Below, in pieces: positions 31,645 through 33,895 of a stretch of DNA of 64,000 bases. The notes under the pieces are model-generated. The model was not told the origin of the DNA. It did not search any database and was given only the letters and a program-made list of their open reading frames with translations. Position numbers and translations under genes: made by a program. Position 1 is the first letter of the stretch. Every line of letters begins with the position of its first letter. The DNA comes from Chlorokybus atmophyticus (taxonomy: Eukaryota > Plantae > Mesostigma and Chlorokybus algae): positions 815,103 through 879,102 of the forward strand of contig RHPI01000026.1 in the NCBI GenBank assembly GCA_009103225.1, in the 5' to 3' direction.

Positions 31645-31832
31645 CTATCGTTCATCCTTGAACAGCGCGCGTAGTTCTTCAGCTTCGGCGGCCATCTCTT
31701 CTTCGGTGCGGGGCTTGCGCTCCGCGTCCAAGTCCAACGGCTCGCCCTCGTGACGCCTCAGATCGGTCGCCTCAATCTAATAATAAGTCAAGCACAATGA
31801 ACCCAGCCGGTTGTAGAACACAATACTACGAC

Positions 31833-31867
<35 letters not shown>

Positions 31868-33895
31868 CACACGCAACATAAGCGCATCTGTACATGTGCA
31901 TGCATACGCATGCACACATGCGTATTTGAGGCTCTCAACTAGCAAAGGAGTGCATTGTTACCGCATCATAAACTTGGTCGTTGCGAGGGAAGTCGCCGAC
32001 CCTCCGTGGCAACACGTGGATGTGTACGTGCGGCACAGTCTGCCCCGCAGCCGGCCCGTCCTGCAGGAATGCAGTGGTGCATACAATTGCACGGTTGTCG
32101 TCACATAACCTTAATTTTAACAATTGCATGCTTGACATCACATCAGTGCACGACTGAGCGCATGAGTACGGGAAGCGGTAAGCGCGCCAATATGAAGCTA
32201 AAGCTCGGATAGGACATAGTTATCACTTGCACACATGCACGCATGCGCTGTACACACACGCGCGGTGCATACACAGCACACACATCCACCGCACATGTGT
32301 GGTGAGGTGAGGAGTACGCAGGACACATGCAAGTGTACGAACACGTTCAGCACGCACATCCATGCGCATGCTATTTGTATCTGTGCAACACACTGCATAC
32401 CTGTATGTATGAGCACATCTTGTGCATATGCTGCACCTACGCACACACAGGCGCACGCACACACCCCCCCACCCCCACACCCCACTCACCCACCTGTATA
32501 GCGAACGTGAGCGACTGCGCGCCAAAGTGCCTCTCGACAGCGTGTCCGACGCGTTGTGCGGTGCGCCAGAGGTCGGAAACCTCCTCGGGCCGCAAGTCGG
32601 TGAAGCGGGGCACGCGGCGGCGAGAGAGGATGAGGACGTGTGTGAGGATGAGAGGTGTTAAGGTGGGCAAGGAGCATAGGGGGAGAGGGGGAGGGGGATG
32701 AGAGGGCGTGTGGGGAGGATATGACCTGCGAGAGAAGGGAATGAGCAATTAGCGGATGAGATTACGTGCACACGCACACGTGCTTGCACAAGCGTGCGCA
32801 TGCACACACAAGTCCCAAACAGTAACACACACCGATGCATGTGCCCACCCGTTCTCGCGTGCACGCGCACACGAGCACGCATCTGTATACTCTACCACTT
32901 ACCCACTCACTCACTCACTCCCTGCTGCATCCACTCAGTGTGTTCTGCAGGAAGAGAGTGGTCGTACCTGGGACGACCGGTTTGAGGTTGACCATCGCGA
33001 GGGCGTGCTCGGACCAGAAGAACGCCTCGAACGCAGGCACTTTGTACGGACCAAAGTCGAATGTTGTGGTTGGTGTGTCAACTGCTGTCGGGACTGACTC
33101 TGTGTCTTCAGCCCGAGGGTGGGAAGCCTGACAGGTAGTTGTTGTTGTTGGTGGTGTGCAGAGGTTGGTACAACTTGGTGTGCGCGCTTGAGCGTGAAGC
33201 AACACATCAAGGGCAGGAGATGGTGCAACAGCGTGTGTGTGCGTTGCAGCTGCACAAGTTTTTTAACGTGTGTGCACCAGTGTAAACGTGTTGTATGTGT
33301 GTGTCTCTTGGCGCATGCATGCGCGTGTGCGCATGACATTGCAATAGGCCTAAGCATACACGCGCATGCACACGCACACGCACGCATACGCATACGCACA
33401 CCTACACGTGCACACACAAAACTACCAACACACAGCAATGGCAACACCTTGTCTGATGACGCCATCGTCCTGAAGCTGATGCGCGTCCGTGAGGCGAGAC
33501 GGGTCCGAGCAACAGTCGCGCGCAGCAAACAAGCAGGAGGGAGCTGCAATCAACAACACACACTACCAACATTAGCAACAAACCAACATGGCATTGCCTC
33601 TTCACAAGCAGCACACCGCGCGTTATGGTGCTTGCTAGAGTGATACGACTATGGGTACATACATTCGCTTGAATGTATGTACCCATAGTTATGAGTAACA
33701 TGTACTACTAGTGGTACACACGTAAGGTTACATATACGCAACGCAATGCATATCAGCCTCTCTGATGTAGGGAATTGTTGCTGATGCCGTCACATACTCA
33801 GCAACAGTGCATGCATGCAGTGAAACCTGGCGGTTGAGAATGAGGTGGCGTGCCGCCAACGTCGCCGCTGTCGTCAGCACCGTTCCCGTCGACAT
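31645..33895 (-). CDS. FHIT: Fragile histidine triad protein (bis(5'-adenosyl)-triphosphatase)
   Basis: FDFGPYKV...[27 protein letters not shown]; [20 protein letters not shown] (HIT motif); [17 protein letters not shown]. Exons include 33895-33827, 33543-33448, 33127-32968, 32725-32723 and 32639 onward. Confidence 0.95.
32640..32722 (-). other. U12-type (minor spliceosome) AT-AC intron, 83 nt, in FHIT
   Basis: 5' end ATATCCTCC; branch site CCTTAAC 17 nt from the 3' end; terminal AC. Removing it restores the conserved PGHVL reading frame. Confidence 0.85.
33648..33689. repeat. Perfect 19-bp hairpin with a 4-nt loop in FHIT intron 1
   Basis: ACTATGGGTACATACATTC-GCTT-GAATGTATGTACCCATAGT. Confidence 0.9.

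Follow-up and report, generated by a model that had tools for sequence, protein, structure and literature searches.

The window analysed here, a 64 kb stretch of Chlorokybus atmophyticus DNA, carries on its minus strand a complete FHIT gene that comprises seven exons when a predicted exon of only 3 nt is counted. Following the public gene model, exon 1 (33827-33895) opens with an ATG at 33895 and encodes MSTGTVL...NRQ, and exon 2 (33448-33543) encodes LPPACLL...MASSDK. Exon 3 (32968-33127, 160 nt) ends with the codons for ...NLKPVVP plus a single G, that is, in phase 1, and is followed by a major-type GT-AG intron (32726-32967, 242 nt, 5' end GTACGA), the micro-exon GTC (32723-32725) and a minor-type (U12-like) AT-AC intron (32640-32722, 83 nt). 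Downstream of these lie a 146-nt exon that opens with the conserved H-V-L and ends in ...LTFAIQ (32494-32639), the exon with the histidine triad (31962-32060) and the last coding exon (31645-31776, IEATDL...LFKDER), which closes with the stop codon TAG at 31647-31645. All features are on the minus strand. The exons other than the micro-exon are intact, and those downstream of it are in frame, with canonical GT-AG borders.

Two of these exons match the Pfam HIT family (PF01230), the H-V-L exon with an E value of 2.6e-8 and the histidine-triad exon with an E value of 1.1e-6, and the triad HVHIHVL is intact, as expected of a HIT-domain protein. In a protein word search, the nearest named relatives were Bis(5'-adenosyl)-triphosphatase/FHIT proteins of green algae and plants. 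The assignment of the gene to FHIT in the original prediction is thus supported by domain, motif and relatives alike, and the streptophyte origin that it proposed is borne out by an exact match between the exon 3 stretch and a Chlorokybus protein model (P0001).

The N-terminus of the public model (exons 1 and 2, window 33448-33895) adds 55 residues that are rich in Arg, Ser, Thr and Ala and resemble a transit peptide; the Arg/Ser/Thr-rich exon 2 also contains a second possible start, MASSDK, immediately ahead of the conserved core, as an alternative to the exon 1 ATG. Within the introns (window 31800-33400) there are many microsatellite-like runs of GT, GC and CA (gtgtgcgtgcgtg..., cacacacgc...), which leave long spurious reading frames without stops and could lead gene calls based on open reading frames astray.

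Splice signals and splice solutions at the FHIT junction

The last bases of exon 3 are ...GTC GTC CCA G (up to 32968); the GT-AG intron opens with GTACGA and interrupts a Gly codon in phase 1. The next AG after this exon lies at 32727-32726 and forms a strong acceptor, with a CTAAT at 32752-32748 (23 nt upstream) and a pyrimidine tract, ttcccttctctcgcag plus AG, at 32741-32726. The GTC directly after it completes the Gly codon with its first two bases and opens a His codon with its third. From 32726 to the H-V-L codons there is no further AG, as the original prediction had noted, and the AT-AC intron itself contains none.

We considered an intron as U12-type AT-AC when it has a 5' site like /ATATCCTT, a branch site like TCCTTRAY near the 3' end and a terminal AC, and the 83-nt intron carries all three. 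Its 5' site, ATATCCTCC at 32722-32714, is perfect from +1 to +7, with CC instead of TT at +8 and +9. The branch site CCTTAAC lies at 32663-32657, with the branch A at 32658, 18 nt from the 3' end; the 17 nt that follow CCTTAAC end in AC (32641-32640), and the next exon opens with ACGTCCTC at 32639. U12-type introns usually have 10-15 nt between the branch site and the 3' end, a range that is exceeded both here and in Selaginella (36 nt). The 3' end has three tandem AC dinucleotides (CACACAC), each a possible 3' site, of which the middle one alone is in frame. The intron interrupts the His codon in phase 1, in line with the known tendency of minor introns to avoid phase 0 (PMC10639083).

The composite of these signals (ATATCCT, 40-70 nt, CCTTAAC, 8-22 nt, AC) occurs at this locus alone on both strands of the 64 kb, where it is counted three times due to the CACACAC run, compared to 0.00 occurrences expected from 100 shuffles. 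Taken individually, the 5' motif and the branch motif each occur at the rate expected from shuffling. The window contains three further U12-like 5' motifs (at 619, 38251 and 61498), all of which lack a branch-site partner. A scan of the window against Rfam at gathering thresholds found no snRNA and no other RNA family.

The reading frame constrains how these signals can be combined. An exon-wise alignment places exon 3 and the H-V-L exon directly against each other at PIVPG|HVL of an uninterrupted homologue (P0003), with no residue missing or extra, but no single canonical intron connects the exon ending in ...CCAG|GTACGA (32968) with the exon opening with ACGTCCTC (32639). GT-AG splicing alone leaves the 83 nt in place and shifts the frame, which runs G-H-I-L-P-T-R... 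and ends at a TAA; that plain GT-AG splicing breaks the frame, as originally proposed, is therefore correct. When we enumerated every deletion that yields ...PVVPGHVL..., joining junction windows of 14-19 codons for the frame tests, no single intron with canonical ends gave PGHVL in Chlorokybus or in the FHIT genes of Selaginella, Musa, Miscanthus and Macadamia. The combination of a GT-AG intron, the exon GTC and an AT-AC intron gave it in all five.

In Chlorokybus, two single deletions restore the peptide, with TA-AC and AC-CA ends, respectively. These would allow for a single non-canonical intron or for an assembly error in the C-rich stretch; such termini, however, fit no known splice class, and an error would need to have created by chance a perfect acceptor, GTC, ATATCCT, CCTTAAC and AC, a set of signals that is also found in five other species. 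We consider the probability of either to be close to negligible.

There are also two two-intron solutions in Chlorokybus, the GTC register and a register shifted by 2 nt. The latter has a 5-nt micro-exon, GTCAT, and a second intron at 32720-32638 (ATCCTC...AC), uses CAT instead of CAC for the His codon and predicts the junction CCAGGTCATGTC / GTCATGTC. Besides the GTC register, this shifted one alone yields P-G-H-V-L with canonical dinucleotides in this species. Its 5' site, however, no longer falls on the ATATCCT consensus, its 3' site lies as far as 20 nt from the branch A, and it is impossible in the five other plant loci described below, where GTC alone works. This makes it a very improbable alternative. 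The GTC register is the sole Chlorokybus solution that combines canonical ends with consensus signals, its 5' site lying on ATATCCT. With both introns removed, the predicted junction is CCAG + GTC + ACGTCCTC, that is, CCAGGTCACGTC, which reads P-G-H-V-L and puts the HIT core back in frame, and the micro-exon would thus have a functional acceptor and donor while returning the conserved residues. The coordinates given in the original prediction for this arrangement (32640-32967) are all correct.

The public Chlorokybus gene model

We searched the protein collection with the exon 3 stretch, with the H-V-L exon stretch and with an alignment of P0003 and the four exon pieces. The exon 3 stretch has a single exact match in the database, P0001, the EukProt/JGI model Chlat1 7201 (Chrsp57S06848), which corresponds exactly to the reading in which the AT-AC intron is retained: it is 130 aa long, continues through G-H-I-L and stops at the TAA within the branch site CCTTAAC (window 32657-32663, minus strand). 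It has no Pfam domain, and the whole HIT core is lost. Among the matches in the protein collection (57-315 aa), P0001 is the only Chlorokybus entry, and there is neither a full-length nor a transcript-derived protein from this species.

One could take this model at face value, with the 83-nt element unspliced in Chlorokybus, a truncated 130-aa product and the downstream HIT exons as a decaying remnant. That the public annotation ends in this way, and that the collection holds no full-length Chlorokybus protein, would fit. The downstream exons, however, are intact and in frame, with GT-AG borders and the catalytic HVHIHVL, no Pfam domain is recognised in the truncated protein, and Chlorokybus retains the minor-type signals that are also seen in orthologues with full-length proteins, which together make a genuine truncation highly unlikely. 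The public Chlorokybus FHIT model is very probably wrong and loses the whole catalytic domain.

The source of the error can be read from the sequence. Read in this frame, C|ATATCCTY, the U12 5' consensus, gives His-Ile-Leu and mimics the conserved His-Val/Ile-Leu, and it is for this reason that predictors are fooled. The expectation that gene predictors would miss the micro-exon was accurate, as the public model is truncated precisely here. The resemblance also occurs in the opposite direction: an uninterrupted FHIT homologue on a metagenome contig (L053, positions 460-500) encodes P-G-H-I-L as CCAGGCCATATCCTC, with H-I-L provided by CATATCCTC, so that its coding sequence itself resembles a U12 5' splice site.

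The junction in other lineages

For comparison, we collected FHIT loci with PGHVL in the annotated protein and examined the DNA between the two exons; Physcomitrium, for which no FHIT record was found, and Catenaria, whose FHIT is intronless and uninformative, were left out. The layout ...CC[N] G | GT...AG | GTC | ATATCCTT...branch site...AC | ATGT[N]CTT is present in all five of the species examined for it, Selaginella, Musa, Miscanthus, Macadamia and Melia, and can be generalised together with Chlorokybus to G | GT-AG intron | GTC | ATATCCT...AC | AYGT. It is the sole consensus-bearing solution in each of the five (four enumerated, Melia read directly). The micro-exon model put forward in the original prediction thus stands alone in combining canonical ends with consensus signals, and its layout is common to five other streptophyte FHIT genes.

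The two introns vary widely in length, whereas the signals around the micro-exon are kept. The GT-AG intron, 242 nt in Chlorokybus, has 58 nt in Selaginella, 2466 nt in Musa, 521 nt in Miscanthus, 1076 nt in Macadamia and about 490 nt in Melia, and the AT-AC intron, 83 nt in Chlorokybus, has 86, 207, 236, 5725 and about 780 nt, respectively. The 5' site core ATATCCT is common to all six loci and is followed by CC in Chlorokybus and by T in the other five. In the four angiosperms, a branch-site-like CCTTGAC, ACTTGAC or CTTTAAC places the branch A 10 nt from the end of the terminal AC, compared to 18 nt in Chlorokybus. The only good branch match in Selaginella (L001, about 1330-1412) is CCTTGAT, 36 nt from the 3' AC and separated from it by a long T-rich run. 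In the annotated Musa acuminata protein (P0071, locus L004), a segment of 33 residues containing the histidine triad is repeated, either through tandem duplication of an exon or as an artefact of the annotation.

In a metagenome scan, ...gcag GTC atatccttt turned up together with the corresponding 3' end in four plant-like contigs, and a fifth contig covers the 3' end only. The comparison of intron positions among orthologues that the original prediction proposed thus places a U12-type intron at the same site in five species and four contigs. The micro-exon is GTC in every locus with the layout, and the Gly codon is always GGT, which is the rarest choice among 55 uninterrupted homologues (GGC 25, GGA 17, GGG 8, GGT 5). 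Since the plant loci are mutually related, this bias is no more than suggestive of a constraint on the tiny exon. The NCBI models of the orthologues appear to use the 3-nt exon, judging from their protein sequences.

Other lineages have one intron of the pair. A GT-AG intron interrupts the Gly codon in phase 1, at exactly the Chlorokybus site, in Brassica napus, Coccomyxa and Cymbomonas and in all other plants examined, but these three do not have the AT-AC intron. In Brassica (L003), the exon opens with GTCATGTT, the expected remnant of a precise deletion of the AT-AC intron, and we infer that such a deletion took place. As Melia, also a rosid, still has the intron, the loss in Brassica is lineage-specific.

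Four further contigs (L054, L064, L070 and L086), which appear to be fungus-like, present the reverse: a GT-AG intron of 41-51 nt lies exactly at the position of the plant AT-AC intron (...GGTC | GT...AG | ATGT, phase 1 of the His codon), and the Gly codon has no intron. Deletion and minor-to-major conversion are known routes of minor-intron loss, and the pattern here fits both (PMC10639083). In the fungus-like contigs, the GT-AG intron may represent a minor-to-major conversion, with parallel gain of an intron at the same position as the alternative.

Order of splicing, origin and relation to known systems

Given these data, we propose that the Chlorokybus FHIT pre-mRNA has a GT-AG intron, the exon GTC and an AT-AC intron, which would be joined to read P-G-H-V-L, a reading to which we assign a probability of about 0.87 from the genomic sequence. 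Because it is common to a lycophyte and four flowering plants, the layout is likely real and old, and since Chlorokybus stands at the base of the streptophytes, its copy would make the arrangement at least as old as the streptophyte ancestor.

The AT-AC intron would be removed by the U11/U12-dependent (minor) spliceosome. Factors on the major-type acceptor and U11 on the donor 3 nt away could presumably not bind together and, as sites so close could not be occupied by both spliceosomes at once, the two introns would have to be removed sequentially. If the minor intron went first, GTC would be fused to the 146-nt exon and the acceptor would then serve an exon of normal size; if the major intron went first, GTC would be fused to the 160-nt exon 3 and the donor would then stand at the end of a normal exon. 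In both cases, the second step would find a normal substrate. As retention of the minor intron stops translation at the TAA of the branch site, FHIT output would depend on the activity of the minor spliceosome.

A broader scenario combines these elements. The position of the AT-AC intron may be older than plants, as would fit a GT-AG intron at that position in fungus-like contigs that arose by minor-to-major conversion; the GT-AG intron may have been inserted later, at a CAG|GT proto-splice site in the green lineage; and the 3-nt exon, unaltered from the streptophyte ancestor onwards, may be an obligatory hand-over between spliceosomes that imposes an order of splicing and gates FHIT expression, the latter because retention ends translation inside the branch site. 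Taken jointly, we regard this scenario as tentative and rather doubtful.

The FHIT intron resembles other U12-type AT-AC introns: it has ATATCCT, a CCTTAAC near the 3' end and a terminal AC, lacks a pyrimidine tract with AG, interrupts its codon in phase 1 and is kept at the same position among orthologues. It differs from the typical case in that its upstream exon is just 3 nt long, which puts its 5' site 3 nt from a major-type acceptor. The micro-exon, in turn, is comparable to the coding microexons of plants (Yu et al. 2022, PMC8831610; MEPDB, PMC12409088), which are likewise at most 15 nt long, conserved, in frame with a motif and missed by annotation. The former study classes all junctions except GY-AG as non-canonical (PMC8831610), whereas one flank in FHIT is AT-AC, and neither work mentions U12 introns, AT-AC introns or FHIT.

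Closely spaced sites of both spliceosomes are known from U2/U12 twintrons and adjacent competing sites, where major and minor sites likewise lie a few nucleotides apart in one pre-mRNA (PMC8329584). Those, however, give rise to alternative isoforms, whereas FHIT would need both introns to be removed serially for one productive mRNA. In the USSE of SNRNP48 and RNPC3, a U12 5' site also lies just downstream of a major-type 3' site, and by analogy the FHIT donor could help to define its acceptor, but the USSE is itself unspliced and drives unproductive isoforms (PMC8329584), while the U12 5' site in FHIT would be a real intron start. FHIT also has a likeness to a further system in its stepwise splicing across a tiny exon, and differs from it in involving two types of spliceosome and in keeping 3 nt in the mRNA. 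That system is recursive splicing with zero-length exons, in which adjacent intron segments are removed stepwise by one type of spliceosome and no exon is left.

Microexons and U12 introns are each well known, and the database proteins of the orthologues already read through this junction. In the literature, we found no paper on FHIT and minor introns, nor any that describes a 3-nt exon flanked by one major-type and one minor-type intron. A 3-nt exon with a major-type acceptor and a minor-type donor would provide a natural and conserved test of the proximity and order of the two spliceosomes, whose crosstalk has so far been studied mainly on competing sites and the USSE. As a class flanked by GT-AG and AT-AC introns, such exons would be missed by microexon finders restricted to GY-AG flanks. 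From both introns in streptophytes, through the GT-AG intron only in Brassica and two chlorophytes, to a GT-AG intron at the AT-AC site in fungus-like contigs, a single gene would exemplify the retention of a minor intron, its precise deletion and its probable conversion to the major type. The FHIT locus is therefore of interest for spliceosome crosstalk and for the evolution of minor introns, and would correct the annotation of the gene in Chlorokybus.
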